64,000 bases of DNA from Monocercomonoides exilis PA203. Its lineage: Eukaryota > Protista > Preaxostyla. The stretch lies in the NCBI GenBank assembly GCA_001643675.2, contig LSRY02000015.1:1426001-1490000 (forward strand), written 5' to 3'. The notes below the pieces were generated by a model. The model was not told where the DNA came from. It saw nothing but the letters and a program-made list of their open reading frames with translations, and did not search any database. This document shows, piece after piece, positions 38,001 to 64,000 of this stretch. Numbering within the stretch: the first letter of the stretch is position 1; each line of letters begins with the position of its first letter. Position numbers and translations under genes: made by a program.

Positions 38001-41000
38001 TCCTGTCACAGGCACCAGCAACGAAATACGAAAAGTGAGCTGCGAACGAAGCGGTGGTTTGCCTCTCTGAATGAAGATGAGATCGCCCTCTTGAACGTGG
38101 TTCTGCCGCACAGTCGCATCCTCCTTTGAAAGAAGCCGCCCTCTCGCCCCGAAGATGTCGGAGGTGTACAGCCGGCAGAAGTCGACTGGGAACTCGACAA
38201 TTTGCGCAATGGCAACTTTGCTAAAAAAAGAAATAAGAGGATTACCAAAAATTTATGAAGAAATAAAAATGAAAGTATTTTTTTAATTTTTTGTTAATTA
38301 GAATATTTAGAATTAAAAAAAAATCTTAAATAAATAATAATCGTGAATGTGAAAACACACCAAGCAGAAAGCGGCCCATTCGCATCGACAATAACAGTCC
38401 CTTCTGGAATGACAAACGGAACGTCGTTTCCTTCAACAGCTGGCGGATCGTCTTTGGACTTCAGCACTTTGAACTTGATCTTAATCAAGTCGGGCGGAAG
38501 CGGCTTGTCTTTAAACAGATTGCGCGCAAATTCTGCATCTGACTCAAACCCTGGAGGTGGAAGAGGCGGCGCCTGCGGAATACTCTGCTTGCCTGCAGCT
38601 GACGGCACAATCAGATCACCTGCCATCGAAGCAGAAGACGAAGACACACAGTCAGATGTGGACAAGCCGTGATCACCTCGCGTCTGTCCTTCAGCAAATG
38701 GAGATATAAGCGCGTAGAATCTTTCCCAGTCTTTGATCCCAGAGTGGATGACGTATTTGTAGTCGTCCTTCACCTCTGACCCAACTCCATTCATCTGCTG
38801 CGTGCGGAACAGGCGCGGCAGACACCACGCTGTCAGATTCGCATTCACTGCTTCACTAAATGCTGTCCCTGCCTTCATTTCAACTGGAGCATTGTCAACT
38901 TCTTTTTCTCCTTCTCCTTTAGCGGCTGCTGGCTTATCGTCCTTCTTTTCAGCCTCTTGGTTTTCTTGATTTTTGCTCTCGTCTTTTGCTGAATCGGCAT
39001 TATTCTCTGTGTTTTGTCGTTTTTCCTCGCTTTTCTCTGAGGAATTAGTTTTTTCTGCTTCTTCCGCTTTTACTTCTTTATCATTCTTTCCTTCACTTTT
39101 TGGCATTTCTTCAATCTTCTTTTCATCCACCTTGTGGTTTTCTGACATCCTTTCCTCTGTTATCATTTCATTGATAAACGCCTTCAGGATTATCCGCTTC
39201 AGCTCCAAAATGGTCAAATCTGACGGAAAAGTCATAAACAGCATCTGCTGCCTGTCAAAAGTGGCTGGCCGCGAAATCGCCGTGAGGGCGTCTGTGTGCG
39301 ACGGAAGCTGCAAAGGCACAATAAACAGGCACATCGGCATGTTTCCCTCGGCTGCATTGGAAGAAGAAGAAGATGATGATGATGACGTCTTTCCACCCAA
39401 CGAAGTGTTTGAGACAGCAGTCATCGGGTCGTTGATGAGCTCTCCAGGGAAGCACTTGAACGAGGCAGCAGAAGAGAACACATAAGTTGACACTCTCTTG
39501 CCCAGCCCCATTTCTGACAGCTCTTTCGGCGTCAGGCTGCTCATTGCAACGCCGCCGCTGCCGAACAAGCGGTCCAACAGAGGTGTGTCTTTGAGCGGCT
39601 GTGGCAGCACAAGAATCGTCGAGTTGCTCATCGGAAACGGAAGGTCTGCAAATTGGATGCCTCCGTCGATGTCAGTCAGCACTTTCCTTCGCTTGATTTG
39701 AGTGGTGGTGCTCTTCTTGTCTTTCTCTTCCTTCTTCTCACCTTCTTTGGATTCTTTGGATTCTTCTTCTTTCTTCTCTTCCTCAAGCACGGTTGTCTGA
39801 TATTTCACCACTTTCTCTCCATTCTCGTTTATCTGATGTGTCACAGACAAAACAAGATCACCCACTTCCCAATGTGCTCCGCCTCGATATTTCGACCTCA
39901 GCACATAAATATACATGTCTGAGTCATCTTTCTTTTCTTTTTTTGAGTCTTCATTCTCATTTGCCTCACTTTCGCCTTGTGTTCCATCCGAATTCGTTGC
40001 TTTCTCCTTCTCCTGCTCTTTCCCTTTCCCACCTTTCCCTTTCTTTTTGCTCTCTTCTTCTTCCTCTTCCAGAATCTCCCTCCTCTTCTGCTGAATCGTG
40101 TGGTGCCTCAGCCGCTCCACTGCCATCCACAGCGGCGTTCGCAAATCAACATCCCAGCTGACGTCGTGTTTGTCTCTTTTATCTCCTCTCTTTGGCTGAC
40201 TTCGATACGACTGCAAAACTGGATGCTTTTCACGGACAAGTGGGGGAAGCTCTTCTTCTTCTTTCTCTTTCTCTTTCTCTTTCTCTTTTTCATCTTCTTT
40301 CTTGTCTTCATCTGCCTCTTTCTCTTTCTCTTCTCCTTCCTTCGCTTTCCTCTCCTGCTCTGCCACATTCTTCTCTCTCTCTTTCCTCTGCGCTTCCATC
40401 TCCTCCGCCAGCGTCTGTGGTTTGCGTCCCGTTCCCTGTTGCGACTCTTGTTTCAGCAGCTTGCAAGATGTGGGAAGTAATATGCGATACGTAAATCGCT
40501 GCATCTTCAGCGTCATGAGTTCTCTTCGCAAAGTTGAGCAGACATTTTGCAGCGACAGCTCGAAGTGCAAATGAGGGGGAATGACAGACGCATCGCCAAT
40601 TCGAGCAAAAGGAACAGAAGATGGGAGGATTGTGCTTGGATGAGGAGATGGAGCGGGGGAAGAGGAAGGCTTTGATTGTTGTGATGGAGAAGGGGATGGA
40701 GATGCTTGTGAAGTTGTTGCATCTGAATTCATTTCTGAAGATGAAGATGAAGAAGAAGATGAACTTGAAATCTTTCCATTTTCATCAACAACCACATCGT
40801 CCCATCCTCCCAATCTTATCTCCTTCACCGGCTCTTTCCCTTCCGCACCTTCAGGCGCCAGCTTTCTGTACAGCAGCAGATATGCTGTGCCTGATGACCC
40901 CTGAAACGAGTTTGTGACAACCTGAGGAGAAATACGAGTGACTGAGGAGTCATTGAAGTCGTACCACGCACCGCAGACTTTCTCCAACAGAACAGCGGGG

Positions 41001-45173: not shown

Positions 45174-45920
45174 AAATTTCTCTTCTAAAATAAAAAAATA
45201 AATACTATTAAAGTTAAATTCACAAATAATGGTCATTCAGAAAATTATGATGATTTCATTTTTCACATTTTAAAAAAATAACTACTTTATGTTAACAGAA
45301 GAAAAAAAATATTTTCAAAAAAAATTTATTATCGTTTTTGAAATTTAACTTGAATGAAACAAAAGCAACAAATTAGAAAGAATCTTCTTTCAAAATGATA
45401 TTTGATAAGAGTTCTAATTTTTTATAATTCCAGATTGAAATAAATACGAAAAAAAAATTAAATAAAGATATTATTTTTATTATAATAAATTTAATAAATC
45501 AGATACAATTAAATTTTCTGCAATTCCTCAAGGACCGAAGTCCCACAGTTAATGATTTTGCTTTCACTAAGGCTTTTTTGATGAATGCTTTGAAAAAAAA
45601 AATGATGAAGCCAAACGATGAAATGAAGGCATCTATATAATTACAACAGCAACTGTCAATATATTTTCAGAGATGCAGCAACACCATCCGTATGGTTGCT
45701 CCACTCTTCTTTCTCTTGTCATTGAAGTCACATCGTTTTGTCAAGCAAAGCTGTTCAGCCACGACTTTTGTCCCGTTTGCGGTTCTTGCTTGCTCCGCTA
45801 AATCAAAACTCCCTCTGCTAGCTCACGTTTTGCCCACTTCTCTCAATCGATTCACTATATGTCAGTGCAAACAATGAAGCAGTTTCCATGCAAATGTTTT
45901 TCACCCGTGACGCTTGTGCA

Positions 45921-48900
45921 TCACTCTCGATCTCTACGCTCAGGCCTTACAAGTGAGTAAATTGAGCTCTCATTATAAATCGTCCTGCTTGATCCACTTT
46001 CATTGCTGGCCTTGCTCCTATCTTCTACCCCGCTGCCAATGTCAATCGCATCTGAAATCGTCAGTGTCACTGCACCTGGCGGAAACCGCTGAATGAACTC
46101 TCGTTTCATCTCAACAAGCGTCGGCCGGCTCTTGCTCTCTTCCAACAAGCACCGCTCCACGATCCCTCTCATCGACGGATCTCCAATCTTCTCAACCCTT
46201 GGTCGCTCCCCATTCACTATCTTCTGCCCAGCCACTTCTGCTTCATAGTCTCCAAATGGGATTTGAAGGGTCAAGCACTCCCACAGCATCATCCCAATCG
46301 AAAAGGCAACTGACTCCTTTGTTGCCCCCATCTTCTTGTTGATATGCAGCTCAGGCGCCTTCCACCTCAGGCACTCTTTTTTGAAACTATCTTCTTCCTC
46401 AAAGGCAGATGAGGGCAGAGAGTCTTCATCATCATCATTGCCACTGGCAGATGTCACAACGGTTGATGATGAAATGGATGATGAATCTGAATCATCATCT
46501 AGTAAAATATCAGAATGCATCACAATGCAGATGACCATGTGCTCGGAGAAGAGAACAATGTGCGGACTCAGATTATTCAATGATTGAAGAGGGTTTTCCA
46601 TCTCATCAAATGAATGGAGTGAGAGATTAGCCACCCAGAACAGGATCTGAGCAGCTGTTTGCTCCCTCTCTTGAAGACTTCCAATCGCCATCTCTTTTGT
46701 CTTATTCCTCCCATGCAGGAGCATGAACAATGAATCCCTCAAATCCACAATCAGCTTCTCATGAGGCGATGAACAGGCCATTGCATCAACCAAGTTCGAC
46801 ATCGACGAGGTTGTAGGACACAAATCCTCCCCTCGAACAAATGTTGAATCTGAATCAGTTGAGCAAGTGGAAGAAATTGATGGCGAAGGTGTTCTCTTCC
46901 TTATCTCTTCTTCTTCATCTTTCTCCGACATCCATTGAGGGATCTTGTCTGAGTCTCTTCCAAGGATATATTCAGTTGATCCACTCTCGGAGAGAAGATG
47001 CTCTGAAGACTCTGAGTGTCCCAAGCTTTTCTCATACACTCTCTTCTTCATCCTCTCATCATTCTTCTTCTCAGCCTCTCTTTCTGCTCTTCTCCACTGC
47101 TCCTCAGGTGACATCTCCATCGTAACCATCTCAAATGCTTTGGGATCTTTTCTGATGTTGTCATTCACAATCTCTTGCAATTCCTCATTTCTTTCCTTCA
47201 CTTTCCTCCATCGAACAATAAATAAAATAAATCCAATCAGAACAATCAACAATATGATGCCCATGATTATCACAATCAACAACCAATACGATTTCCCTTC
47301 TTTTCCTCCTTCAACAATCCTTTCATCTCCATTAGCCTTGGGCTCACTTCTGTTCTTCAGAATGAAAGAATCAGTGGATGATGGGTTTTTGGCATTTCCA
47401 AACAGAATGCTCACTCTCACCTCTTCCTCATCTCCTGCCTCACGAATTATCTCCCTTTTCAGCCTCCCTTCGACTTCTGTCTCTGAAGCATATTCACTTT
47501 CATCAAACTCATATTTCTCTATCTGCTTTTCATCGCCCATCTGTTTCACAATCATGAATGACAAGTTGCAAGGCAGCAGAAGCTTCCCTTTGAATACAAT
47601 CTCCATTTCTGCTCCTTTCTCATTTGCTTCAACACTCTCCAACACTGGGATGAAAAATGAAGATGCTCTTTCAGAAATAATCCCTTCAAAGCTGCATCCA
47701 TAATTCAACATCCAAAGTGATGTGTTTCTTTCCCATCCATCTCCTCCTTTCAGACTCATCACATTCAATGTTCCAGAATCTGAACAGATGATATTTCTTC
47801 TCAGTGATGGGTAATTTGCTATTGATGGATTGCTATTCAAAAACTCTCCTTTCTCAATTATCGCATTTCCTCCACTCACTGTCATCCCTCCCTTTGAGGA
47901 GTTGCAGATTGTTGTGTCTTTTATCATTACAGAACTCTTCGAAAAATCAACAACTGAACCATTCCACTGACAGATCTTATTACTCACACCATTTATTTCT
48001 TCGGTATTATCAGCCATGCTTCCCTCAAACTGGCACAAATCCATCAAAGCACTTTCTGCCAAAGCAATTGCCACTTGGCTTCCTTTCACACAATCTGATA
48101 TGCACTCACGAATAGAGCAGTTGCACATCTCCAAGCCGGCCAGAGGTTGAGTTGCGCAAACAACACTAGGCCTGGATGCTAATCGGCTGATATTTGTGAA
48201 TGATGATAACGCCAAAGATAAAACGAGTGAAGAATGGCCATTTTCAAATGAGATAAGGCTTCTATCTTGGAGAGAAATGTTTGTGGCTGCCAACTTTGAA
48301 ATTATCACTTTCTCGTTCTTTCCACATTCAATCGCTGAGCTTGTGCATTGGGCATTGCAAACAGTCAGATCTTCAAATGTTGCTCTTTCTGAGCACAATA
48401 TCTGAAACATGGACTTTGAAAATTTCAAGCACCCAACACCACATCGATCTGCCTCAAATATCCCATTTTCAACAACCAGCAGAGAAAAGTCAAAAAGGGT
48501 TTGTGAATTCTCCATTGATCCGCTCTCTGATAAGAATGAAACAGATTCGAGAATTAGAGATCCATTCGCTTGGTGTATTAAGCACGGGCAGACAACATTC
48601 TGCATTACACCAAAAACAAATGAAACTTTCTCAATTCGAACAGTCTCTGATGTTGTCACAACTCCATCAGCCAAGCTCATCTCATTCACTTTTATCTCAG
48701 CATTCCTGCTTGCCTCCATCGACTTGATTGTCACCTTTTGAGCTGAGCATGAACCAGTTAGTGTTGTCTCATTCCATATCAGCAGCTGCGAATAATCCGA
48801 TGGAATGATGTGGCTCACCCCAACATTCAGCGATGAGCATGCACCCTTCATTTCCCCACAGTTCTTGCTGTTGCTGCTGTTCCCCACAATCGATGACACA

Positions 48901-51900
48901 AATATGAATTCGCTCCTGAACACATACACCCTCCCCAACAGATCCTCTTCGTCCCCATAATCGTCTGCTGTGCATCCCCATATCGCCAGCTCCTTCACAA
49001 ACGGCTCCCCAAAGTTTATCAGGAACTGTGATTCACTTATCTGCGAGTCAAGGTCTGTGCACTTCACAAACATATCTCTCCCCTTCAGTGCAACATTCTC
49101 CTTGAATGTGATGTTCGACAGCACAAATGGCAAAGACTTCTTTGCAACACTCTGCGTTTTCAAAAACAATCCTCCGCCTCTCCCGTTGTTCGAACAGAAG
49201 CATTCTGTCACATTTGTGTGATTCATTTCCAGTCTTCCCCTCTCGTTGAGAAGGAAAAACATGCCTCCTCCTTCATTCGAGCTTGCAGATCCACAACCAT
49301 CAATTGTCGAATTCTCCATTTTCAATTTCATTTCATTCTGCATATCACAGAAAAGAAATGAAGGGTTGTTTGGCACTGTGTTCTTCACATTCACAAACGA
49401 ACATTGCTCAAACAGAACATTCCACTCTTCTTCTTCTGCATTATCATTTCCATTTCCAGGAATCTCACTTTCACTCATCGCAATTGCACTTTTCTCGCTC
49501 AATGATATTTCTTCAAAGGACACATCGCTCATGGTTATCACACATCCAACTGATATGCTCATTATCTCATGCATTGATGCCAACCCTGCCATCTTTGTCT
49601 TTTCAATCTCGACAATTCCTTTTGTGGCACTTATCAATACAAATGTCAATTCACCTTCTGCATTATCACTCATGTGAATTGAACATCCTGCAATACTCGT
49701 ATTGATTGCATCTGAGCCTGTCTGGATGAGGATGCTTGCCTCGTTATCGAAGGCAGTCGGAATCACCATCCCCACTTCTTTGAATTGAACAACTCCTTTG
49801 CATTCAACAACAGCGCCCTTGTCTCCTTCAATCGCTTTCACAAATTGAATTTTGTCTGTTTCGCCATTTGTTCCTTCCAGCCTCATCCCACTCACACTCA
49901 TTTCATTCCTCACATCACAAGTCCCCTGAATGGCAATCGACCAAATCCCCAAACCACTCCCTCTCTTCAGCCCATAATCAACAGACCCGCACGGATACTC
50001 CAACAGCCCACACACAACCACATTATTTCCTTCCCTCGCCACATGCACACTCGACCCAACCTCTTTCCAGAAATAGATCAGTGGGATTGCACACTCTCTG
50101 TTTCCTCCATCGTACCCTCTCATCGAGTCTTCGGTCAGCATCTCCAGTCTATCTTTCACAAATGGCAGGGTTTCGTTCTTGATACTGCTGATAAGCGATG
50201 GAGATGAAACAAACAAATCCTTCCCAAACCTTGCATTGTTTGGCTTGTCAGAAGAAAAAGTTGGAGAGGATATCATAAATGTTGCCTCGCCCATTTCACT
50301 CAACAAGCTCAACATGATTCCTCCTCCATATCCAACTTCTTCCCCTTCATATGGAGCTGTGCAACAATAAAACGAACACAAATTTATCAAAAGATTCGTT
50401 TTCGAAGATGCTTCACAAAAGAGTGCACCACCTCCAATCTCAGTTCCTTCTTCTTCAACAGCACACTCTTCAAATGTACAGTCATTTATTTCCACTTTGC
50501 AATCGCTTCCATCATAACCATCGTTCGTAATGCTGATGCACCCTCCACTTCCCTTCGAACGAGTAATCGATGAAAATGTGCATCCTGTTATCTTCTCGAT
50601 ATTTCCGTTGTGGAACTCAACAATACATCCATCGCCAAATGAGATTTCTCCAAAATCGCTGTTTGTCATGTTCATTGAAGGCCTTGAATTAATACTTCCC
50701 TCAACAATGAAAAACGATGAATCTTCTATTCTCATATTCATTGTTGAAAACTCACTCACCTCCACAGCCCCTCCAACAACACTCACAAATACTGTTGAAA
50801 TAGCCTCAATCCCTCCTTCCATCCCACATTTGTTCAGTGTGAGTTTCTCAGAATGACATTCAAACACACTTTCATGAGATGAAAGCGATTGAATCAAAGA
50901 AAATACAATGCTAGTCATTGACACAGAAACTGAGTTCTCAATCAATCCACTTTGCGTTCCCTCTGTCAGATCGGCAACCTCACATTTCATCTCATTCTGT
51001 TTTGCCTTGACGTTCCATTCATCTGTCCTCAAGCTCAATTCATCCTCAAAGGCAAATGATTCAAGAATGGTTATGTCTTTTTTCTTCCCTTCAAAATGGA
51101 CCGATGCTGCCTTCGCGATTGTGGAGCATGGAAATAACTCATATCCACATATCGAAAAATCATGGCTCAATGATCCTCCTCCAACAAAGGCAGACCCTGA
51201 AAAGTTATCCCACAGATACACCACCAGCGGGATGGCAAATGCATCATTCAATGTTGATCTCTCGAATCCATTCATTTTTGTGAAGTTATTCAAATCAACT
51301 TCAAATCCCATCGATGTTCTGCTAATCACACTCGATAGATCATAAGAGTTAATGAAGATTTCTTTCCCCTCTCTGGCATCACATCCAGAAAATGAAACAT
51401 CCCTCAAAATGAATGAACTCGCCTCATCATCCAGATGAAGATAAATCCCTCCTCCATATCCGTGCTCTCCACCTGTGTTTTGTGTTGCCTTGCAGCTCAC
51501 AAGTTCAAATAAATCACTTTCATCATTTGGAAATATTGCCCTTGCTGAGTCAGCATCTGTCATATTTCCCACAGTGAATGATGATCCTTCTTCCATTTCA
51601 ACCCACAATCCTCCTCCATTTCCTCCATTGCCCTCACACCCAGACATCGCCCCTCCAATAATTTCCAGTGAGCAATCTCTTCCAAGTGTGCATTTCATTG
51701 CTCCTCCATCTCCTCCATCTCCTTTGAATCCACTCATCGTGTTGTTTGTGAGCTTCAGCGTCTTGGCTGAATTTGTGGAAATTACTCGAATGGATCCTGA
51801 TGGCAAATCTGCTTGCGAAGATGCTTTCACTGAAAGTGTTGAATCTTTAATCGAAAAAGATGCTCCATTCGCCATCCCAAACAAAACACTATTTCCTGTC

Positions 51901-54900
51901 GAGCTCATATCCTCAACATTCATGGAAGCGAATGAACCAGCAGCATTGATTCCATCAAGAGAAATCAACGGACAATTCTCAATGGTCAAGGACAAGACAT
52001 TCAACGATGAAACTGAAACATCGCCTTCCGTTGCTGATAAAAACACATAAGACAATGCTGATTGGGGATCTTGAAATGTCAGCGAGCAGCCGTCAAGGGA
52101 AAATAACTGTGAGGTGGAACAGAAGAATGCTTCGTGGTTTGGAAGAACAGATGGAACAGAGAAAACAAGTGAACTCACATTCGTATTTGCACTGACCGTT
52201 ATCATGCTTCCGTCACTTCCATTCGGATCATTGCTCACCTCCCATCCACCGTTTACATCTTTCCCCCTGATTGTGTGTTGGAAGGAGCCAAATGTCAGCT
52301 CATTTTTCATTTCAATCATCCCATCGACAACAATCTTCTTTTCACTTATTTGCCTTGTCAGAGAATGCTTCAGAGTCAGACAGGGAAACTCGGCAAACCC
52401 ACAACGAGAATGATCAAATGCATCAACATTACTCACAATGATCTCTTCTGGCAAAGGAATCAAATAAACACAAAGTGGAATTGGAATTGAATCATTTCCA
52501 TTATCATACCCTTGTATTTTGCTCTTTGTATCAAACGAAGCTGTCAATGAAGTGATTTTCCCACCTTTTGCTGTTGTTTCCAGATCGATTGAGTCAACAA
52601 AAATATCACTTCCCCATTTGGCTCTGTTCCCCTCAAATGCTGATGAAATCTGAAACTCTGCATTTGTATCTCTCACTTTCAGCCCAATCCCTCCTCCTCT
52701 CCCTTGGACGGTTGAGGCATAACAGTTTTTCACAACACCTCCACTCACATTCAATGAACCAACATTCCCCACTTCAACCATCATCCCTCCTCCAAACTCA
52801 GAGTCTTCACTCCCACAGCCATCAAGTGTGCATCCCTCAAGGGTTATCGAATATGACCCTTCACCCACGCCCATCAGCGATGATCCTGCTGTTGTCCTCA
52901 CAATATTATTGAATGTGCAGTTATCCAGAGACAATGTCACAGACGATCCTTGAGGCAGAGACATCACACTTGTTGTGCTGAATGTTTGTGACCATCTCAC
53001 ATCTTTCATCTTCAACTCTCCCCCTTCCATCTTCACAAGTGAGTTCTGAATGCTCCTCTCTTCTGAATGATCTGCATCCATCGATATGTTCAATCTCTCC
53101 AAATTGATCCCTCCAGACCCTTGAACCTCAAACAATATGCTTCTTCGGTTATTTTCAAATGACGAGTTGTGAACCACAGACAGATCGCTCACAGTCAATT
53201 CCCCTGTTCCAACACAAAACAGACTCAGTCCATTTGTCTCAAATTGTGTTTCAATAGCCGAGCCAGCTGGAGAAACTCCACTCACAGAGATTGTTTTCTC
53301 CCCAATATCAACTCCCTTTCCCTCCACAACTGTTCCACCCAACACCTTGATTTCCTCCACAAATCCCACAATCATTTGAGTCAGACAATGACTCACTGTT
53401 GCACAGGGATAAGTTTGATTAAGTCCACAAAAAAATGTATCTTTCCCTTTATTATCACTTGATGAAAATTTCACATATCTAATTCTCCCTCCATCATTTC
53501 TCAACCATTCACTTTTATCAGCAACTGATGACCATTCAGTCGAAACTCTGTTATCTGTTGTTCTTGTGGAAAAGCAAGTACTATCTATAAGATTGTCAAT
53601 TGAATTATAAATGACAACATCATGACCTCCTTTAAGGGCAATGTTGTTGTGAAAAAAGCAGTAAAACAATAATTTCTCCTCATATTTATTGAAATTATTG
53701 ATATAAATTCCTCCTGCCCCTCCAATTGAATAACAATTTAAAAAACAACATGAAAGACAACCAGCTTTTATATCGCATTGAACTATGTCACATCCACCTC
53801 CAGCAGAACTTATTTCCGAATTTGCGCTGCAATTGTTAAACAAACAGTCAATAATGAGTATCTCTTGATCATTAAAAGGAGAGTTTCCCACACTGATTCC
53901 TCCAGCATCATTTCCTGACCAACAATTTTTGAAGAAACAATTTGACGCATAACCCTTTGAAAGAATTGCATAATAACAAATTCCACCACCTCCTCTATCT
54001 CCTTCAAGCATTGCACATGTGCAATTGTCGAACTTACAGTGTTCAACATTTGCCTCAAGGATATTTTCCCCATAAATACCACCTCCCCTTGTTTTTGTTG
54101 CTTCACAATTCGAAAATGAAGAATTGAGAACTGCGAGCGTTGCATCTGGATTGTCGTGCACATAAAGTGCCCCTCCACAATCAGCTGTTTCATTGATCCA
54201 CTCACTCAACTTAAAAAATTGTGTTTCAGTTGAGCTCAATCTGTTCTTTTTGTTCAGTGAGTTTTCGATTCTCATATTATTAATGAATGATGAATTTGTT
54301 GATGAAAATAAAGATGAATTAACAGTTCCACAAATGACTCCTCCTTGAAGTCCATTTGCTGAATCACATATTTGACAATTGTCAAGAACACTTTTCAAGG
54401 CTCCGAGTTTTATTTTTTCAAAATTTGAATTATGATATTGAGTGATATTGAAAAATGAACATTTCGATATTTCTTCAGAATCACAACATCCAGAATGAAG
54501 AATGCTTCCACAATTCAAAATCACATTGTTGCAGAATGTTGATTCAGATAATCTTAGTGAGGCTGTGAGTGACGTTGAAGAAAGGCTGCTCATTGGTTGA
54601 TATTTTGGAGACCAATATGAAACATTGAAAAGATTGAATGAACCAAAACAATGAACCGGAGAAACACTCATCTTTTCTGATACAACAATTGTAATATGTT
54701 CGAACTCGCACTTTGAAAAAGTATCTATTGTCATGGAAGGTTTTGCTCCAAATGTATTGAATCTCAACGAAGACACAATTATTGATGCATTTGTTTCCAT
54801 CATCGATGATTGGACTTCAGCCTGAACTCTTCTGTTATTGATAGACATAAAGTCAAAATTAGTAATCTTGCTTGAATAATCGAAATCTTTCTGTTCTTTA

Positions 54901-55079
54901 CCGAAGAAAAATCCATCTTTTTCAAGCAACCGTGTGTTAATTGTTTTTGATTGAAAGTCATCATTTAACAAAGAGAAACTCTTCTGAGCTTTATTCATTT
55001 CTATTCCCTTCTCAAAGCATTGGAAAGAATGAATCATCAAAATAAATGCAATAACAGTCCATTTTTTAGAAACAATCAT
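45921..55079 (-). CDS. Giant type-I membrane receptor-like pseudokinase 'B' (3052 aa)
   Basis: Intact intronless ORF. Hydrophobic N-terminal signal peptide, five CGxxxxPC-type beta-helix modules, a TM segment identical to gene A's, and the LRWKAPE/FSIGMMLWECLT C-lobe. Confidence 0.93.
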   Translation of the reverse strand: MIVSKKWTVIAFILMIHSFQCFEKGIEMNKAQKSFSLLNDDFQSKTINTRLLEKDGFFFGKEQKDFDYSSKITNFDFMSINNRRVQAEVQSSMMETNASIIVSSLRFNTFGAKPSMTIDTFSKCEFEHITIVVSEKMSVSPVHCFGSFNLFNVSYWSPKYQPMSSLSSTSLTASLRLSESTFCNNVILNCGSILHSGCCDSEEISKCSFFNITQYHNSNFEKIKLGALKSVLDNCQICDSANGLQGGVICGTVNSSLFSSTNSSFINNMRIENSLNKKNRLSSTETQFFKLSEWINETADCGGALYVHDNPDATLAVLNSSFSNCEATKTRGGGIYGENILEANVEHCKFDNCTCAMLEGDRGGGGICYYAILSKGYASNCFFKNCWSGNDAGGISVGNSPFNDQEILIIDCLFNNCSANSEISSAGGGCDIVQCDIKAGCLSCCFLNCYSIGGAGGIYINNFNKYEEKLLFYCFFHNNIALKGGHDVVIYNSIDNLIDSTCFSTRTTDNRVSTEWSSVADKSEWLRNDGGRIRYVKFSSSDNKGKDTFFCGLNQTYPCATVSHCLTQMIVGFVEEIKVLGGTVVEGKGVDIGEKTISVSGVSPAGSAIETQFETNGLSLFCVGTGELTVSDLSVVHNSSFENNRRSILFEVQGSGGINLERLNISMDADHSEERSIQNSLVKMEGGELKMKDVRWSQTFSTTSVMSLPQGSSVTLSLDNCTFNNIVRTTAGSSLMGVGEGSYSITLEGCTLDGCGSEDSEFGGGMMVEVGNVGSLNVSGGVVKNCYASTVQGRGGGIGLKVRDTNAEFQISSAFEGNRAKWGSDIFVDSIDLETTAKGGKITSLTASFDTKSKIQGYDNGNDSIPIPLCVYLIPLPEEIIVSNVDAFDHSRCGFAEFPCLTLKHSLTRQISEKKIVVDGMIEMKNELTFGSFQHTIRGKDVNGGWEVSNDPNGSDGSMITVSANTNVSSLVFSVPSVLPNHEAFFCSTSQLFSLDGCSLTFQDPQSALSYVFLSATEGDVSVSSLNVLSLTIENCPLISLDGINAAGSFASMNVEDMSSTGNSVLFGMANGASFSIKDSTLSVKASSQADLPSGSIRVISTNSAKTLKLTNNTMSGFKGDGGDGGAMKCTLGRDCSLEIIGGAMSGCEGNGGNGGGLWVEMEEGSSFTVGNMTDADSARAIFPNDESDLFELVSCKATQNTGGEHGYGGGIYLHLDDEASSFILRDVSFSGCDAREGKEIFINSYDLSSVISRTSMGFEVDLNNFTKMNGFERSTLNDAFAIPLVVYLWDNFSGSAFVGGGSLSHDFSICGYELFPCSTIAKAASVHFEGKKKDITILESFAFEDELSLRTDEWNVKAKQNEMKCEVADLTEGTQSGLIENSVSVSMTSIVFSLIQSLSSHESVFECHSEKLTLNKCGMEGGIEAISTVFVSVVGGAVEVSEFSTMNMRIEDSSFFIVEGSINSRPSMNMTNSDFGEISFGDGCIVEFHNGNIEKITGCTFSSITRSKGSGGCISITNDGYDGSDCKVEINDCTFEECAVEEEGTEIGGGALFCEASSKTNLLINLCSFYCCTAPYEGEEVGYGGGIMLSLLSEMGEATFMISSPTFSSDKPNNARFGKDLFVSSPSLISSIKNETLPFVKDRLEMLTEDSMRGYDGGNRECAIPLIYFWKEVGSSVHVAREGNNVVVCGLLEYPCGSVDYGLKRGSGLGIWSIAIQGTCDVRNEMSVSGMRLEGTNGETDKIQFVKAIEGDKGAVVECKGVVQFKEVGMVIPTAFDNEASILIQTGSDAINTSIAGCSIHMSDNAEGELTFVLISATKGIVEIEKTKMAGLASMHEIMSISVGCVITMSDVSFEEISLSEKSAIAMSESEIPGNGNDNAEEEEWNVLFEQCSFVNVKNTVPNNPSFLFCDMQNEMKLKMENSTIDGCGSASSNEGGGMFFLLNERGRLEMNHTNVTECFCSNNGRGGGLFLKTQSVAKKSLPFVLSNITFKENVALKGRDMFVKCTDLDSQISESQFLINFGEPFVKELAIWGCTADDYGDEEDLLGRVYVFRSEFIFVSSIVGNSSNSKNCGEMKGACSSLNVGVSHIIPSDYSQLLIWNETTLTGSCSAQKVTIKSMEASRNAEIKVNEMSLADGVVTTSETVRIEKVSFVFGVMQNVVCPCLIHQANGSLILESVSFLSESGSMENSQTLFDFSLLVVENGIFEADRCGVGCLKFSKSMFQILCSERATFEDLTVCNAQCTSSAIECGKNEKVIISKLAATNISLQDRSLISFENGHSSLVLSLALSSFTNISRLASRPSVVCATQPLAGLEMCNCSIRECISDCVKGSQVAIALAESALMDLCQFEGSMADNTEEINGVSNKICQWNGSVVDFSKSSVMIKDTTICNSSKGGMTVSGGNAIIEKGEFLNSNPSIANYPSLRRNIICSDSGTLNVMSLKGGDGWERNTSLWMLNYGCSFEGIISERASSFFIPVLESVEANEKGAEMEIVFKGKLLLPCNLSFMIVKQMGDEKQIEKYEFDESEYASETEVEGRLKREIIREAGDEEEVRVSILFGNAKNPSSTDSFILKNRSEPKANGDERIVEGGKEGKSYWLLIVIIMGIILLIVLIGFILFIVRWRKVKERNEELQEIVNDNIRKDPKAFEMVTMEMSPEEQWRRAEREAEKKNDERMKKRVYEKSLGHSESSEHLLSESGSTEYILGRDSDKIPQWMSEKDEEEEIRKRTPSPSISSTCSTDSDSTFVRGEDLCPTTSSMSNLVDAMACSSPHEKLIVDLRDSLFMLLHGRNKTKEMAIGSLQEREQTAAQILFWVANLSLHSFDEMENPLQSLNNLSPHIVLFSEHMVICIVMHSDILLDDDSDSSSISSSTVVTSASGNDDDEDSLPSSAFEEEDSFKKECLRWKAPELHINKKMGATKESVAFSIGMMLWECLTLQIPFGDYEAEVAGQKIVNGERPRVEKIGDPSMRGIVERCLLEESKSRPTLVEMKREFIQRFPPGAVTLTISDAIDIGSGVEDRSKASNESGSSRTIYNESSIYSLVRPERRDRE
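49520..53393 (-). repeat. Left arm of a >=3.87-kb near-identical inverted repeat (pairs with 60126..64000)
   Basis: The reverse complement matches 60126-64000 from AGTCATTGTCTGACTCAAATG onward; about ten substitutions and one indel seen by eye. Confidence 0.95.
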
Positions 55080-57425
55080 TGTAATTTTTTGGCTTATGGT
55101 TCTTGTTCAATTGTCAATGATCTTTTATCCCATTAATGAATATTTAGATTTATTTTCCATGAGCTTTCTGTAATAATCTTTTCAACAATTTTTGGACTCA
55201 AATCGATAATTCAACAAGAAATCCTGTTTTTTACAAAAAACGCATTTCTTTAAATAGATTTAAAAACAATAAATTTGAGAAAATTATTTATTTGTTCTTG
55301 TTTCAACAATTTTTGTGAATATATAAATATATATAGATATATAGATATATATACAAATGGAAAATCGAATCCTTTGAAGAACAATGCAATTAACAAATAA
55401 ACCTTTGATAAAGAATATTTGTTGTTTTGTTATTACACAACAATGTTTAAATCGTTAATATATTATTTCGTTCAAACAAGCAAGAAAATTAATTATCTGT
55501 TTTTGTGAATATTCAGGCAGAAGATATTCACCTTGTTTTTTTTTTTTTTTTTTTTTTTTTTTATTATTATTATTATTTTTTATTTATTATTTTTTATTTT
55601 TTTTTGAATTATCAGTTTTGTTATTTCGATTGTGATGAACGATTTATTTTATAAGAAAAAACAAATATATGATATTCATGAACTGAATATAGGAAAAGCT
55701 AATATAAATATCGAATTTTTTGAAATCTTGTTTGAGATATTTTTGAATAAAGAAAAAAAAGCTAATAACCTATTTATATCTTGCTGATTCGATTGATTAA
55801 ATTTCATTTTGGCTGTGGGATTTAATTTTTCAATAAAGTTTCACATCAAAAATTTCAAATCTTCTTTTCTTTTCAAATAAAGACAAATACTATTCAGCAA
55901 TTAATTAAAACTAGCATTGATGTTCAAATAGAACGATATTTGTGAAAAATGAATCAAAAAAGAAATATTTTGTTCATTTGAAAAAAGTTGTATTATTTGC
56001 AACTTTTCAAAAAAAATGAATCATAATATTAATTATGTTTTCTTCATTTTTGACTCTTTTGAAATAATTCTTTATTATTATCTTTCAATTAGCTTCGAAC
56101 AAAGTTCATCATTTAATTGTTGATCAAAAACAGTTATTCATGAAAATCATTTGAATAACATTCAATAGGAACAAAAATATTTTCAACGGAATAAGAATTG
56201 CCATTCAAAATGAATTTATTCTATGTGAAAGTTAAAACACTGAAAAGAATTCACTTTCACATTTCAGTGAACATGAATGGATTTGTTCTCAATATCGTAA
56301 CAATAATTTACTGTTTTTATTTATCAAATGTTCATTTTTTCGATGAAAGCAAAAATTCATCTTTCTCAAGAAAAACAAATAATATTTATTGTTTCTTGAA
56401 AAGTTCCTTTTGTTTTTTTGTCATGAGAATATGAAAATGGAGTATTTAAATCAAATTTTCATTCCCCTTCACCAATTTATATGGATTATTCATTTTGGAA
56501 AGTTGCAAATGTTTAATATCCGAGTTTAATGAAAATGGACATTTTTTGATCATTTTTTGTTGTTGATCCATCAAATTTCTCCACTATGCACTTATGCTCA
56601 TATCAAATAAGCATGTTGTTTCTAATCAGCAAAATGATAGAGATTGATAATTCAATTGCTAAATATGATTAAATAAGGAACATTTTTATTTAACCAGGAT
56701 ATTTAACATTTGCGACTTTTCAAAAAGAATCACATTATTGATATGTTTTTCAATCTTTCAATAGAATTTATTTCTTTTGAATGATTATGGCAATAGGATG
56801 AAAATTTTTAATCTTGAGATTAGTATTAATTTGAGTGAGTAAAACAATATTTTTTGCTTTGTTCAAAAAAATCTTGAAAAATTTTATATTAACATGATGC
56901 ATGAAGTCTGTTTCTTTCTTTCTTTCTTTATTTTAATGATAAATGAAATGGAATAGCAACGTATTTCAGTGTTGTTCACGTGATGTTTTGTTTTTGATAT
57001 CCTTGAATTAAAAAAGAGTTCAAAAAGATTTGCAAACAATAATTATCAAAAGTGTCTAGGTAATGCGAAATACTCAAAAAAAAAAATTAGAAATAATTCA
57101 AAACATAATTGAATATTAAAGGTTGCTTTGCAAGATTTATGTTTTTATTTTTTTAAACAAATATAGAAAGAATAATAGTCCAAAATGGGCAAAACAAATG
57201 ATCAAAAACAAATTGGAAATTCCTTTGATTTATGTTTAGAACTAAAATTGTCACGTAACTATTTCTTTGAACGTTTATATGTGTGCAGCCTTTGTTCAAT
57301 ACATATTATAAATGCATATTTTATAAACAATCACGTCCTCCATATAAAAAATGTTCTGATGAAAAACTATTTCAGGATAAAAAAACCACCAATTGTTTTT
57401 TCATTAATTTCAATTTCATTTTTTA

Positions 57426-58209
57426 CACCAAAAATTATTCAACATCGAAAAAGTTTAATTCAAGATCGAAAATTATTATTCGAAATTGCAAAACTTTAAT
57501 TCGAAATCGAAAAAGTTTAAAACAACATCGAAAATATTTAATTCAACATCGAAAATTTTTTGTCGTGAAAAAATTTGAAAAAAAATTAAAAATTCATACT
57601 CATGTCAGTTTCTTTTCTTTCAGCTATTGATCTGAGAAATTTGTCAATTTCAATTAGAAAATTATTTTTTGATGCTTTTTTGGTGTTTGATTGTATTCAA
57701 TAGCGTGAATATAAAAAAGTTGAATATTTTTTTATTCTTCACATGTGTTCAGGAGACAATAAGCAATTTTTGCAAAAAATAAAAGCAATAGGATAGTTCA
57801 TGATCTTGTTTCGTCCACAAAAAGACAGAATTTCATCTCATTTATTGAATACGAAATGTTTTGAATTCATATATTGCATTGGAAACTGAAAAAATAAAAC
57901 ATTTTCAATTTTCATATTAATAAAAGAATCGATTGATATCAGTCTTTGTCATAAAAAACAGTCGTTTAAAACGAAAGAAAAACATTTCCAATAAATAAAC
58001 ATTGGTTATTATCAACATTTGTGTCAATAAAATTTCCTTGGTTTTGACTTGAATTGAAATTCCGAACTAATCAACTTCTTTTTCGATTTTGAATTAAACT
58101 TTTTCGATGTTGAATTAAATATTTTCGATTTCGAATTAAACTTTTTCGATTTTGAATAATAATTTTCGATGTTGAATTAAAGTTTTTCGATCTTGAATAA
58201 TTTTTGGTG
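57426..58209. mobile_element. Foldback-type MITE (~780 bp) with modular TIRs and TA target duplication
   Basis: TA|CACCAAAAATTATTCAACATCGAAAAA ... TTTTTCGATCTTGAATAATTTTTGGTG|TA. Each arm is about six tandem 21-bp units (consensus ATTCAACATCGAAAAAGTTTA) in inverted orientation. Confidence 0.85.
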
Positions 58210-58529
58210 TAGATATTTCAAACGAAAATATTTCTTTTGATAGCTATTCTTCTTTTCATTGATAGATAATTGCGCATTGAAGAATATATTGTTGGAAATG
58301 ACCTCAAGATGTTAATATTCCTCATTCAGAAAGAATGAAACAAAATCAAAGAGATTCAAGAGAGGCAAAAAAGAAAATACCATCTTTCATAACCGAATAG
58401 TTTAATAATTGAAAGACAAAGCAATATGAACAATCACCGATTTTTCAAATGGAAGAAAGATTGGAAGAATTGATATTTTCCAGAGATACTGAAAAAATTT
58501 TGAACGTAATTATAAAAAATAGATAAATA

Positions 58530-61500
58530 ATGGCCCATAAGAATCTTTCTAATATGATTCTTTTTATTTTGGCTGAGTGCTTGCGTTTGACATTTTGTGG
58601 CACAGATACAAATGATGCACAAAGGAATGGACATCTCGTTTATCAAATTCCTACTCAGTCTGAAAGTCAAATTTTGGAGAAAGAGAGTGTTGTTCAAATG
58701 TTTTGTGAAATACATAACTCATCAGTCGAATTCAAGGGGATATTGTTTGAAGGAGCAGATGATTGTATAACTTTTGACATTCAAGCAAATTCATTCCTGC
58801 ACTTTGATTACTGCATGTTGATGAGAAAAAGAGGTTTCAATAAACATTTTGTCTTCAATGAAGGAACATTTGAAATAACAAACACCACTTTGAACATCGA
58901 AAAAAGAGACAATAATTGTGATATGACAATGATGAGTCTTGTGAAGATGGAAGGAGACCATTCATCGTTGCTTGTGAGAAACAGTGAGTGGAAGAACATT
59001 GTGTTTTTCTGGAGTGGAAGCATCGTGAGAAACGGAAAAGGAAGTTTTGAAGGAATCAAAAAGTGCGTTATTTCAAACATCACAATGAAAATCATTAAAA
59101 CTGATGAAATGACATTTGAGAAAGTGTCGATGATGAAAACGAGTTCAATGGAAGATTGTCGAGTTGAAAGTTCGATGAATGTGCTGGAGGGAGGGATTGT
59201 GAGTGGAACAGAAGGATCCATTGCATTTTCTTGCAACAATTGCACATTCATTCACAATGAAAGGGTGGATTGGAGAGTGGGAAATACAGAAAGAAATTCA
59301 ACAACTCAAACACAGACATATAAGAATGCTGAATGGAATGAATGCTCTGCTCCATGTGGTGGTGCACTATATGTGCATGACAATTCGGATGCCATTCTGA
59401 CTGTTGAGAATTCAACTTTTGTGAAATGCAATGCAACTTCAACAAGAGGTGGAGGAATATTTGCTTTGAATATTGCTGAATGCCTTATGAAGCATTCAAC
59501 ATTCATTGAATGTTTCAGCTTTTCAGAAAGTCCTGGAGGCGGAGGGGCTGGAGCAGAAATAGAAGGAATGACTTCACAAGTGTTTGTTGAGGACTGCCTT
59601 TTTAAAGATGATTTGTCCGGAGATGATGCAGGAGGGTTAGGAATTTGGAGTTCAAAAACGACGAAAACAAAAGATTGTGTTTTCGGTTGTATATTCAAAA
59701 ACTGCTCTTGTCAACTGACACTTTCATCATATGGTGGAGGATTCATTCATTGGAATCCAGTAGATCGAGTGGTCGCAAGAAACTGCCATTTTGAGAATTG
59801 CCAATCAATGCAGTATGGAGGTGGAATGTGTTTAATAGTTAGTACATTTGGCCACGAAATCCTTTGGTTTTGCTTTTTCCATAACAACACTGCACCTCTT
59901 GGAAATGATATTTATGTGCACGACAATAGTCAAAGTCCCCAAACTGTCTTTTGTTATTCGACACGAACAGAAGGAGTGAGATATTTTGCATATGGAATAG
60001 ACAAAAGTGAATGGCTTCCAAACAATGGAGGAAAATGCAGATTTGTTGCTTCAACTCAAAATCAGACAAAAGCAAAAGACACATTCAGCTGTGGATTGAA
60101 TGAAAGTTGTGCATGCCTCACAATCAGTCATTGTCTGACTCAAATGATTGTGGGATTTGTGGAGGAAATCAAGGTGTTGGGTGGAACAGTTGTGGAGGGA
60201 AAGGGAGTTGATATTGGGGAGAAAACAATCTCTGTGAGTGGAGTTTCTCCAGCTGGCTCAGCTATTGAAACACAATTTGAGACAAATGGACTGAGTCTGT
60301 TTTGTGTTGGAACAGGGGAATTGACTGTGAGCGATCTGTCTGTGGTTCACAACTCGTCATTTGAAAATAACCGAAGAAGCATATTGTTTGAGGTTCAAGG
60401 GTCTGGAGGGATCAATTTGGAGAGATTGAACATATCGATGGATGCAGATCATTCAGAAGAGAGGAGCATTCAGAACTCACTTGTGAAGATGGAAGGGGGA
60501 GAGTTGAAGATGAAAGATGTGAGATGGTCACAAACATTCAGCACAACAAGTGTGATGTCTCTGCCTCAAGGATCGTCTGTGACATTGTCTCTGGATAACT
60601 GCACATTCAATAATATTGTGAGGACAACAGCAGGATCATCGCTGATGGGCGTGGGTGAAGGGTCATATTCGATAACCCTTGAGGGATGCACACTTGATGG
60701 CTGTGGGAGTGAAGACTCTGAGTTTGGAGGAGGGATGATGGTTGAAGTGGGGAATGTTGGTTCATTGAATGTGAGTGGAGGTGTTGTGAAAAACTGTTAT
60801 GCCTCAACCGTCCAAGGGAGAGGAGGAGGGATTGGGCTGAAAGTGAGAGATACAAATGCAGAGTTTCAGATTTCATCAGCATTTGAGGGGAACAGAGCCA
60901 AATGGGGAAGTGATATTTTTGTTGACTCAATCGATCTGGAAACAACAGCAAAAGGTGGGAAAATCACTTCATTGACAGCTTCGTTTGATACAAAGAGCAA
61001 AATACAAGGGTATGATAATGGAAATGATTCAATTCCAATTCCACTTTGTGTTTATTTGATTCCTTTGCCAGAAGAGATCATTGTGAGTAATGTTGATGCA
61101 TTTGATCATTCTCGTTGTGGGTTTGCCGAGTTTCCCTGTCTGACTCTGAAGCATTCTCTGACAAGGCAAATAAGTGAAAAGAAGATTGTTGTCGATGGGA
61201 TGATTGAAATGAAAAATGAGCTGACATTTGGCTCCTTCCAACACACAATCAGGGGGGAAAGATGTAAACGGTGGATGGGAGGTGAGCAATGATCCGAATG
61301 GAAGTGACGGAAGCATGATAACGGTCAGTGCAAATACGAATGTGAGTTCACTTGTTTTCTCTGTTCCATCTGTTCTTCCAAACCACGAAGCATTCTTCTG
61401 TTCCACCTCACAGTTATTTTCCCTTGACGGCTGCTCGCTGACATTTCAAGATCCCCAATCAGCATTGTCTTATGTGTTTTTATCAGCAACGGAAGGCGAT

Positions 61501-64000
61501 GTTTCAGTTTCATCGTTGAATGTCTTGTCCTTGACCATTGAGAATTGTCCGTTGATTTCTCTTGATGGAATCAATGCTGCTGGTTCATTCGCTTCCATGA
61601 ATGTTGAGGATATGAGCTCGACAGGAAATAGTGTTTTGTTTGGGATGGCGAATGGAGCATCTTTTTCGATTAAAGATTCAACACTTTCAGTGAAAGCATC
61701 TTCGCAAGCAGATTTGCCATCAGGATCCATTCGAGTAATTTCCACAAATTCAGCCAAGACGCTGAAGCTCACAAACAACACGATGAGTGGATTCAAAGGA
61801 GATGGAGGAGATGGAGGAGCAATGAAATGCACACTTGGAAGAGATTGCTCACTGGAAATTATTGGAGGGGCGATGTCTGGGTGTGAGGGCAATGGAGGAA
61901 ATGGAGGAGGATTGTGGGTTGAAATGGAAGAAGGATCATCATTCACTGTGGGAAATATGACAGATGCTGACTCAGCAAGGGCAATATTTCCAAATGATGA
62001 AAGTGATTTATTTGAACTTGTGAGCTGCAAGGCAACACAAAACACAGGTGGAGAGCACGGATATGGAGGAGGGATTTATCTTCATCTGGATGATGAGGCG
62101 AGTTCATTCATTTTGAGGGATGTTTCATTTTCTGGATGTGATGCCAGAGAGGGGAAAGAAATCTTCATTAACTCTTATGATCTATCGAGTGTGATTAGCA
62201 GAACATCGATGGGATTTGAAGTTGATTTGAATAACTTTACGAAATTGAATGGATTCGAGAGATCAACATTGAATGATGCATTTGCCATCCCGCTGGTGGT
62301 GTATCTGTGGGATAACTTTTCAGGGTCTGCCTTTGTTGGAGGAGGATCATTGAGCCATGATTTTTCGATATGTGGATATGAGTTATTTCCATGCTCCACA
62401 ATCGCGAAGGCAGCATCGGTCCATTTTGAAGGGAAGAAAAAAGACATAACCATTCTTGAATCATTTGCCTTTGAGGATGAATTGAGCTTGAGGACAGATG
62501 AATGGAACGTCAAGGCAAAACAGAATGAGATGAAATGTGAGGTTGCCGATCTGACAGAGGGAACGCAAAGTGGATTGATTGAGAACTCAGTTTCTGTGTC
62601 AATGACTAGCATTGTATTTTCTTTGATTCAATCGCTTTCATCTCATGAAAGTGTGTTTGAATGTCATTCTGAGAAACTCACACTGAACAAATGTGGGATG
62701 GAAGGAGGGATTGAGGCTATTTCAACAGTATTTGTGAGTGTTGTTGGAGGGGCTGTGGAGGTGAGTGAGTTTTCAACAATGAATATGAGAATAGAAGATT
62801 CATCGTTTTTCATTGTTGAGGGAAGTATTAATTCAAGGCCTTCAATGAACATGACAAACAGCGATTTTGGAGAAATCTCATTTGGCGATGGATGTATTGT
62901 TGAGTTCCACAACGGAAATATCGAGAAGATAACAGGATGCACATTTTCATCGATTACTCGTTCGAAGGGAAGTGGAGGGTGCATCAGCATTACGAACGAT
63001 GGTTATGATGGAAGCGATTGCAAAGTGGAAATAAATGACTGTACATTTGAAGAGTGTGCTGTTGAAGAAGAAGGAACTGAGATTGGAGGTGGTGCACTCT
63101 TTTGTGAAGCATCTTCGAAAACGAATCTTTTGATAAATTTGTGTTCGTTTTATTGTTGCACAGCTCCATATGAAGGGGAAGAAGTTGGATATGGAGGAGG
63201 AATCATGTTGAGCTTGTTGAGTGAAATGGGCGAGGCAACATTTATGATATCCTCTCCAACTTTTTCTTCTGACAAGCCAAACAATGCAAGGTTTGGGAAG
63301 GATTTGTTTGTTTCGTCTCCATCGCTTATCAGCAGTATCAAGAACGAAACCCTGCCATTTGTGAATGATCGACTGGAGATACTGACCGAAGACTCGATGA
63401 GAGGGTACGATGGAGGAAACAGAGAGTGTGCAATCCCACTGATCTATTTCTGGAAAGAGGTTGGGTCGAGTGTGCATGTGGCGAGGGAAGGAAATAATGT
63501 GGTTGTGTGTGGGCTGTTGGAGTATCCGTGCGGGTCTGTTGATTATGGGCTGAAGAGAGGGAGTGGTTTGGGGATTTGGTCGATTGCCATTCAGGGGACT
63601 TGTGATGTGAGGAATGAAATGAGTGTGAGTGGGATGAGGCTGGAAGGAACAAATGGCGAAACAGACAAAATTCAATTTGTGAAAGCGATTGAAGGAGACA
63701 AGGGCGCTGTTGTTGAATGCAAAGGAGTTGTTCAATTCAAAGAAGTGGGGATGGTGATTCCGACTGCCTTCGATAACGAGGCAAGCATCCTCATCCAGAC
63801 AGGCTCAGATGCAATCAATACGAGTATTGCAGGTTGTTCAATTCACATGAGTGATAATGCAGAAGGTGAATTGACATTTGTATTGATAAGTGCCACAAAA
63901 GGAATTGTCGAGATTGAAAAGACAAAGATGGCAGGGTTGGCATCAATGCATGAGATAATGAGCATATCAGTTGGATGTGTGATAACCATGAGCGATGTGT
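58530..64000 (+). CDS. Giant receptor-like gene 'C'; frameshifted at ~61257 (920-aa ORF) and 3'-truncated by the window
   Basis: Signal-peptide-like N-terminus and divergent first ~530 aa, then near identity to gene B. AGGGGGGAAAG (61251) vs AGGGGGAAAG in B shifts the frame; the B-like frame resumes downstream. Confidence 0.85.
60126..64000 (+). repeat. Right arm of the near-identical inverted repeat
   Basis: Pairs with 49520..53393; lengths 3875 vs 3874 nt fit the single +1 G. Confidence 0.95.

Follow-up and report, generated by a model that had tools for sequence, protein, structure and literature searches.

Near-identical bodies and distinct heads in palindromic pairs of receptor genes of Monocercomonoides exilis

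We examined a stretch of 64,000 nucleotides from the protist Monocercomonoides exilis PA203 (positions 1426001-1490000 of contig C9; hereafter, the window), in which two giant genes of one receptor family, termed B and C, diverge from a common intergenic region. From about amino acid 563 of gene B onwards, the bodies of the two genes are almost identical and constitute the arms of a palindrome, and between these arms lie two unlike N-terminal heads and the intergenic DNA that separates them. The interpretation that we favour, at a probability of roughly 0.85, is that of a gene-bearing palindrome whose 7.9-kb arms are kept alike by gene conversion and whose heads are older and have been inherited as a unit.

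Anatomy of the palindrome

The arms were aligned with blastn (45511-53399 against 60120-68008, arm B against arm C), which gave 7,890 aligned columns at 99.82% identity, with 12 mismatches and two gaps. Arm C runs past the end of the window; the next 10 kb of the contig were added and the numbering of positions was continued beyond 64000. Within the window itself, a repeat search returned two abutting inverted pairs, 49520-52267/61253-64000 (100%) and 52260-53450/60069-61259 (98%), with an offset of one base. The principal features of the locus are as follows.

45511-53399, minus strand: arm B, 7.89 kb, comprising gene B from about amino acid 563 to its stop codon and about 410 bp of 3′ flank
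60120-64000, continuing to 68008, plus strand: arm C, which leaves the window
45921-55079, minus strand: gene B, an intact open reading frame (ORF) of 3052 amino acids
58530-61292, plus strand: first open frame of gene C, 920 amino acids, ended by one additional G
53400-55079, minus strand: alpha head (tip of gene B), 560 amino acids, outside the arms
58530-60119, plus strand: beta head (tip of gene C), 530 amino acids, outside the arms
55080-58529: intergenic region between the two start codons, AT-rich (23% GC)

The spacer between the arms measures 6,720 bp and is made up of the 1,680-nt head of gene B, the 3,450-bp intergenic region and the 1,590-nt head of gene C. Arm identity begins at 53393/60126, where TV or TI is followed by SHCLTQM, 12 amino acids after the first CG..C motif, and the last mismatches before this point are at 53394/60125 and 53396/60123. 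At its outer end, the identity at this locus stops about 410 bp beyond the stop codon. Nine substitutions are specific to one arm and are clustered (60260; 62238/62241/62245; 63315; 63366/63370/63381; 63834), and two one-base homopolymer indels distinguish the arms, one in a G5/G6 run (52263-52267/61252-61257) and one in a T run (45602/67917). Over the stretch 63835-67916, both arms are identical. At the protein level, the alpha head is 37% identical to the beta head over about 390 amino acids, and the first 145-170 amino acids of the two cannot be aligned; their DNA is approximately 50% identical.

These measurements bear out an earlier description made from the window alone (the original prediction), which had placed genes B (minus strand) and C (plus strand) head to head around a 3.45-kb spacer, had recognized an abrupt start of identity at 53393/60126 after the first CG...C motif, had judged the N-terminal regions of about 560 and 530 amino acids to be only distantly related, and had located arm-specific single-nucleotide differences near 62240 and 63365. 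The arms, which it had reported as identical over at least 3.87 kb, extend to 7.89 kb once the sequence beyond the window is included, more than the window could display. Such a palindrome is far beyond chance. Nor is it a fold-back of the assembly, because its arms flank two different heads and lie within a 1.84-Mb contig between ordinary genes, and because the same architecture is present at six other loci.

Seven palindromes across the genome

The whole genome assembly was searched (82,301,135 bases in 101 contigs), and the first 3.9 kb of arm C was found in at least 40 copies. Ten pairs of these matches lie in opposite orientation 4-17 kb apart, and no direct pair that close was seen. Our full comparison covered seven pairs, namely this locus (P1) and six others; the pairs on contigs C10 and C55 and the single-copy members were judged from the search tables. 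The arms of the seven pairs are as follows.

P1 (this locus): arms of 7.9 kb, 99.82% identity
P2: arms of 8.3 kb, 99.78% identity
P3: arms of 8.4 kb, 97.8% identity
P4: arms of 10.0 kb, 98.6% identity
P5 (convergent): arms of 10.5 kb, 97.5% identity
P6: arms of at least 9.9 kb, 99.98% identity
P7: arms of 8.6 kb, 99.94% identity

Between pairs, the bodies are 77-93.5% identical. The head-to-head pairs analysed always consist of one alpha and one beta head, and this unit has been multiplied to at least eight head-to-head loci; the convergent pair P5 carries two beta heads. Contig C55 (436839-456537) holds a tail-to-tail alpha/beta pair, the alpha head of which is the one closest (89%) to the head of gene B. 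Both bodies of this pair lack the same stretch of about 1.25 kb of the query, and therefore they too would evolve in concert.

Bodies evolve in concert and heads retain older diversity

In a maximum-likelihood tree of the heads, the alpha and beta classes are split with support of 100/100 and are separated by about 1.26 changes per site. The corresponding tree of the bodies (5.6 kb) instead resolves seven clades, each consisting of the two members of one pair and each either supported at 100/100 or made up of identical sequences. P1, P2 and P3 have intergenic spacers that run colinearly in one orientation with 85-93% identity, and a conserved block of 220-270 bp lies upstream of each head and is also recognizable in P4 and P6. 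Because the spacers are colinear, the alpha/beta arrangement with its upstream regions predates the split of P1, P2 and P3, and the bodies were homogenized within each pair after that. The disagreement between the two trees is seen directly, and together with the colinear spacers it shows that the bodies evolve in concert, which we attribute to conversion from arm to arm.

The distribution of the remaining arm differences points in the same direction. When substitutions were counted per 1-kb bin, they were found to be clumped, with 47 and 114 in two bins of P3, 133 in one of P4 and 199 in one of P5, and beside these bins are stretches of 4-6 kb with almost no substitutions. This patchiness fits a mosaic of conversion tracts.

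The inner edges of the arms can likewise be read directly from the alignments. The two members of a pair go abruptly from 45-60% identity to about 100%, at nt 1686 of P1L in P1, at nt 1701 in P2 and P6, at nt 1598-1599 in P4 and P7, and at nt 1569 in P5; P3 has the same inner edge, which is followed by a patch of 92-94% identity. The clustering of breakpoints at the module boundary, which had been proposed as a test of the locus, was thus found in six pairs (P1L nt 1569-1701), in the form of a zone of about 130 nt rather than a site. The outer arm ends range from 0.4 to more than 2.4 kb past the stop codon among the pairs. A boundary zone of this kind fits conversion that is halted where homology ends, and not the action of a site-specific recombinase. 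In all six intact genes, the GC content at third codon positions (GC3) goes up in a step between heads (0.26-0.29) and arms (0.36-0.52), the value for neighbouring single-copy genes being about 0.47. GC-biased conversion is one possible cause of this step.

The heads differ in abundance as well as in sequence. About 14 alpha-like heads are present in the genome, the closest to that of gene B being the 89% identical copy on C55, and the beta class is abundant, with 174 candidates of which the closest to the head of gene C is 82% identical. Within each head, one region stands out.

53579-54179, minus strand: highly diverged region of the alpha head (about amino acids 300-500), whose best other copy is 86% identical
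59430-60030, plus strand: highly diverged region of the beta head, whose best other copy is 76% identical

Amino acids 300-500, approximately, are the most diverged part of the head even within one class, at 62-78% DNA identity, and in P5 this region is at 66%, with flanks at 97-100% on either side. The rate of synonymous change (dS) is 0.9-1.6 in this region and 0.3-0.5 in its flanks, and the ratio of non-synonymous to synonymous change (dN/dS) is 0.2-0.4. Across the heads as a whole dN/dS is 0.2-0.5, and the genes are therefore under purifying selection. Synonymous divergence is thus saturated even between heads of one class, and because dS is high together with dN and their ratio stays at 0.2-0.4, the region holds old diversity that has escaped homogenization.

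Two other explanations of this region were considered and rejected. Positive selection on the variable region is contradicted by the rise of dS alongside dN at a ratio of 0.2-0.4. A recent swap of a head or of a patch into this locus was also rejected, since no near-identical donor for the variable region of either head was found in the genome, the nearest copies being 76% and 86% identical. The minimal reading offered by the original prediction, recent gene conversion or duplication with an N-terminal swap, was therefore partly right: the trees and the seven pairs argue strongly for conversion, and the colinear spacers and the absence of close head donors argue against the swap.

These observations can be combined into a simple model. 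Two giant members of a receptor family stand head to head, with the bodies from about amino acid 563 forming the 7.9-kb arms. Repeated, non-reciprocal copying from one arm to the other would keep the bodies near-identical. Conversion would stop in the zone of about 130 nt where the first module meets the second, since upstream of this zone the DNA of the two heads is only about 50% identical and no longer pairs. The alpha/beta pair, with the upstream region belonging to each head, is older than the duplications that gave rise to the sister palindromes and is passed on as one unit. Whenever the arms cross over, the 6.7-kb head segment would also be flipped, an expected by-product of the same recombination.

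The frameshift in gene C

Apart from one frameshift, the proteins encoded by the two arms differ at only three residues. The frameshift is caused by the following feature.

61252-61257, plus strand: run of six G residues (G6), matched by G5 in arm B at 52263-52267; the sole frame-breaking difference between the arms

The additional G, which lies 1.13 kb inside arm C, closes the reading frame at 61292. The remainder of gene C is open in the next frame (61255-67596) and is 99.86% identical to amino acids 939-3052 of gene B. Across the seven pairs, 14 one-base indels distinguish the arms. Homopolymers of at least five bases hold 11 of these, G/C runs below that length hold two, and the last is a lone A that breaks up a T tract. 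This bias is a direct observation, and it is most evident in P7, the arms of which differ by no substitutions and five homopolymer indels. Exactly one gene is frame-broken in five of the seven pairs, both are broken in P3 and both are intact in P6. The M. exilis assembly was produced with Canu, Nanopolish and Pilon, and residual homopolymer frameshifts were reported by its authors (PMC8767320).

Published gene models bear on the same question. The current NCBI model of gene C (P0100, 2853 amino acids) bridges the frameshift by a false intron of 118 nt (61137-61254). The first position of an older EukProt model (P0101) coincides exactly with the start of the arm; this model is in frame across the G run and has all three residues specific to arm C (L1269, N1642 and I1647). 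A search for an independent gene model that joins the tip of gene C to a full body found none. The same G5 run carries an additional G in one arm of P5 (right arm, contig C9, about 426.2 kb), and the other 12 aligned copies have G5.

We lean towards the view that the gene C frameshift is an unpolished homopolymer error of nanopore sequencing. Were it real, it would be very young, and the next conversion event would erase it or spread it. The frameshift noted in arm C at about 61257 in the original prediction is thus present in the assembly as an extra G, but a genuine break of the gene is doubtful given its homopolymer context and the older model that reads through it. Homopolymer errors in repeat arms, which current models hide by means of false introns, probably account for many of the family's apparent pseudogenes.

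Alternative explanations

Several points weigh against our interpretation and its treatment of the frameshift. Conversion is inferred from one assembly, and where a repeat has two copies, read correction and polishing may remove true differences, so that arm identities may be somewhat overestimated. Because neighbouring genes have a GC3 of 0.47, the step in GC3 does not establish GC-biased conversion. Model P0101 may represent a consensus of both arms after their collapse, and 454 data likewise err in homopolymers, so that its intact frame is only moderate evidence. Finally, an additional G in two separate pairs could equally reflect a real slippage hotspot or a systematic nanopore error. In one rival explanation, the palindrome or its near-perfect identity would be an artefact of fold-back nanopore reads or of repeat collapse and polishing, in an assembly with known residual errors whose polishing can homogenize two-copy repeats. 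This we regard as extremely unlikely. The arms flank two different, intact and selected heads within a contig of 1.84 Mb and between single-copy genes, substitutions specific to each arm persist and three are recovered by the independent older gene model, and the architecture is repeated at seven loci with arms of differing length. A single recent event would also yield arms of 99.8% identity with a sharp edge, and at this locus alone such a young duplication, in which one gene body was copied in inverted orientation onto a neighbouring head or an N-terminus was swapped, with no ongoing process, would account for this identity and edge. It is nevertheless very unlikely when the other pairs are considered, as it would have to recur independently with the same inner edge and with one alpha and one beta head each time, at six or more head-to-head loci whose bodies are 7-23% different; seven independent duplications of this kind are not credible. 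Moreover, diverged patches beside stretches nearly free of substitutions bear witness to repeated partial events, and the split of P1, P2 and P3 came after the heads and spacer were in place.

The headline of the original prediction, an invertible switch resembling phase variation, gained no positive support, as there is neither recombinase nor fixed site, the product of a flip is symmetric and the frameshift is doubtful. In a stochastic or programmed switch of heads, arm recombination would flip the 6.7-kb segment, and a genuine frameshift would toggle which head is carried by the intact receptor. The geometry permits this, with the frameshift 1.13 kb inside arm C, and flips of the spacer are common in other palindromes (PMC8327919). 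A single frame-broken gene in five of the seven pairs (with P3 broken in both genes and P6 in neither), and the gain of one base by the same G5 run in two pairs, would also be in keeping with such a toggle. No recombinase gene was found at the locus, where the intergenic region holds no ORF longer than 115 amino acids and the neighbours encode a UCH hydrolase and an NFACT protein; nor was a short fixed recombination site found, the inner edges of the pairs being spread over 130 nt and the outer edges lying 0.4 to more than 2.4 kb past the stop. The locus lacks these two defining features of a site-specific invertible switch. In addition, the conserved upstream block of each head lies inside the spacer, so that a flip would give an equivalent locus; nearly every frame break is a homopolymer indel in an assembly made from nanopore reads, P7 being a pair with no substitutions and five indels; the older gene model reads through the G run; and the same orientation is kept in P1, P2 and P3, and in P2 and P3 also against a shared outer flank. 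We therefore consider a head switch very improbable.

Flipping of the spacer is a separate matter from a switch. In primate X palindromes, recombination between the arms within a chromatid flips the spacer frequently and mostly neutrally (PMC8327919), and by analogy spacer flipping may well happen here. Since a flipped head would take its own upstream region with it and land on an equivalent body (three residues differ), a flip would have essentially no functional effect, unless the frameshift is real. P1, P2 and P3 share their spacer orientation, and P2 and P3 keep the same orientation relative to a shared outer flank of 1.6 kb; this is weak evidence on flipping. A further reading would combine these elements, with a selected two-headed alpha/beta unit in which arm recombination keeps the body alike and occasionally flips the heads or transfers homopolymer frameshifts, such that the head displayed varies stochastically. 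We think this quite improbable; were it true, it would represent phase variation without a recombinase in a eukaryote.

The proteins encoded by genes B and C

The product of gene B is predicted to begin with a hydrophobic, signal-like N-terminus, followed by the alpha head of about 550 amino acids. CG..C motifs open its repeated beta-helix modules at amino acids 551, 893, 1311, 1690 and 2074, and a single transmembrane segment (amino acids 2599-2622) precedes a cytoplasmic tail of 430 amino acids, which contains the following domain.

46098-46388, minus strand: kinase-like C-lobe, gene B amino acids 2898-2994, PF07714

This is the sole Pfam match of the tail (PK_Tyr_Ser-Thr, 30.7 bits against a cut-off of 23.1) and covers the C-lobe only. 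No HRD or DFG motif could be recognized by eye upstream of the C-lobe, and the tail is probably that of a pseudokinase. A Pfam search of the ectodomain returned no family match. The AlphaFold model of residues 1-905 of B is weak, with a predicted local distance difference test (pLDDT) score of 54 overall and 64-87 for amino acids 280-510; it contains beta-helix turns of short strands and a low-confidence linker at amino acids 519-573. Its top Foldseek matches are to PL6 lyases, antigen 43, pertactin and tailspikes, each of which has a right-handed beta-helix. The model thus supports an ectodomain of beta-helix modules with a low-confidence linker at the position given, and no more than this.

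All 99 and all 109 close protein matches were M. exilis entries of the type 'uncharacterized protein MONOS_..', many of them with PF07714. Judged by these similarities and the kinase match, genes B and C belong to the tyrosine-kinase-like (TKL) receptor family of M. exilis, which is described as the largest family in the genome and comprises 320 of its 332 predicted tyrosine kinases (PMC6759080). A profile of the head and second module matched 2,020 representative clusters, and those looked up contained M. exilis proteins, an 'adhesin-like protein' of Blattamonas and proteins of Streblomastix; the module is therefore present across oxymonads. The public model of gene B (2661 amino acids) uses an internal Met start and a predicted intron (53934-54275).

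Mobile elements and neighbouring genes

One insertion was recognized in the intergenic region of the locus.

57425-58212: foldback insertion resembling a miniature inverted-repeat transposable element (MITE), 788 bp, about 320 bp upstream of the ATG of gene C

Its terminal inverted arms of about 130-150 bp are built from 21-bp repeats, and TA is present at both flanks. The insertion is private to this locus, the matching sites of P2 and P3 being without it; elsewhere in the genome, full-length copies with 81-88% identity number at least 40 (281 candidates). A transposon with giant terminal inverted repeats was considered as an explanation of the locus and rejected, as the spacer has no transposase ORF and the 788-bp MITE is its sole mobile element. 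In P4, the 10-kb spacer contains a DDE_1 transposase fragment (contig C9, about 800.3-801.1 kb; Pfam E = 4.9e-8), from which it would follow that palindrome spacers collect mobile elements.

A long poly-T or T-rich tract of low complexity is located at 55538-55610, about 460 bp upstream of the start codon of gene B. The palindrome is bordered by single-copy genes for a UCH hydrolase (38294-43609) and an NFACT protein (68177-71569). Further away, the window contains a distant family member (156-6644, plus strand) with about 50% protein identity to the body of gene B, and several family fragments (28437-34177); the region is a cluster of receptor genes.

Comparison with known systems

The mechanism that we propose is a known process, of which this locus is a clear instance, and the recurrent architecture is undescribed in the literature searched. 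The published M. exilis assembly paper makes no mention of 'inverted' or 'palindrom' (PMC8767320), and the searchable literature yielded no relevant paper on Monocercomonoides and gene conversion and none that describes this organization in M. exilis. Our interpretation explains the organization of the largest gene family in a much-studied amitochondriate protist: a subfamily of giant adhesin-like receptors would be arranged as two-headed alpha/beta palindromes in which the bodies evolve in concert and the heads retain old diversity.

Site-specific invertible switches, including Hin/Gin/Cin, fim, the shufflons and the inversions of surface genes in Bacteroides and Mycoplasma, rely on short specific sites and a dedicated recombinase, in most cases with a single fixed promoter. 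The M. exilis locus resembles these systems in that a segment bounded by inverted repeats could in principle, if flipped, rejoin coding ends and bodies. It differs from them in the length of its repeats (7.9 kb), in having no fixed site and no recombinase, and in having a promoter for each head. Antigenic-variation families of the VSG, var or VSP type are marked by mutually exclusive expression and by silent donors that are copied into an expression site; in the M. exilis genome, neither head has a near-identical donor for its variable region.

One of the closest parallels is with Giardia muris, in which identical genes for variant-specific surface proteins (VSPs) occur in head-to-head and tail-to-tail pairs (PMC7641422). 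Both cases involve a metamonad gut protist, a large family of surface proteins and inverted identical sequence, with recombination or segmental conversion inferred from trees (PMC7641422). The proteins are unrelated, however, being cysteine-rich VSPs in Giardia and beta-helix receptors with a kinase-like tail here, and the identity extends over whole genes in Giardia but only over the bodies in M. exilis, where each pair has one alpha and one beta head.

Another close likeness is to the palindromes of primate X and Y chromosomes, which bear genes, have arms that are more than 99% identical owing to conversion and enclose a unique spacer (PMC8327919, PMC8600007). The M. exilis loci share with them long, near-identical inverted arms around a unique spacer, and in both the arms are more alike within than between palindromes. 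The arms described here are 8-10 kb in length, whereas those of primates measure tens to hundreds of kilobases. Furthermore, the inner edge of the M. exilis arms falls inside coding sequence, at a module junction, so that a shared body is joined to different 5′ heads with their own promoters, and the unit has itself multiplied, occupying no fewer than eight head-to-head loci of a protist without known sex chromosomes.

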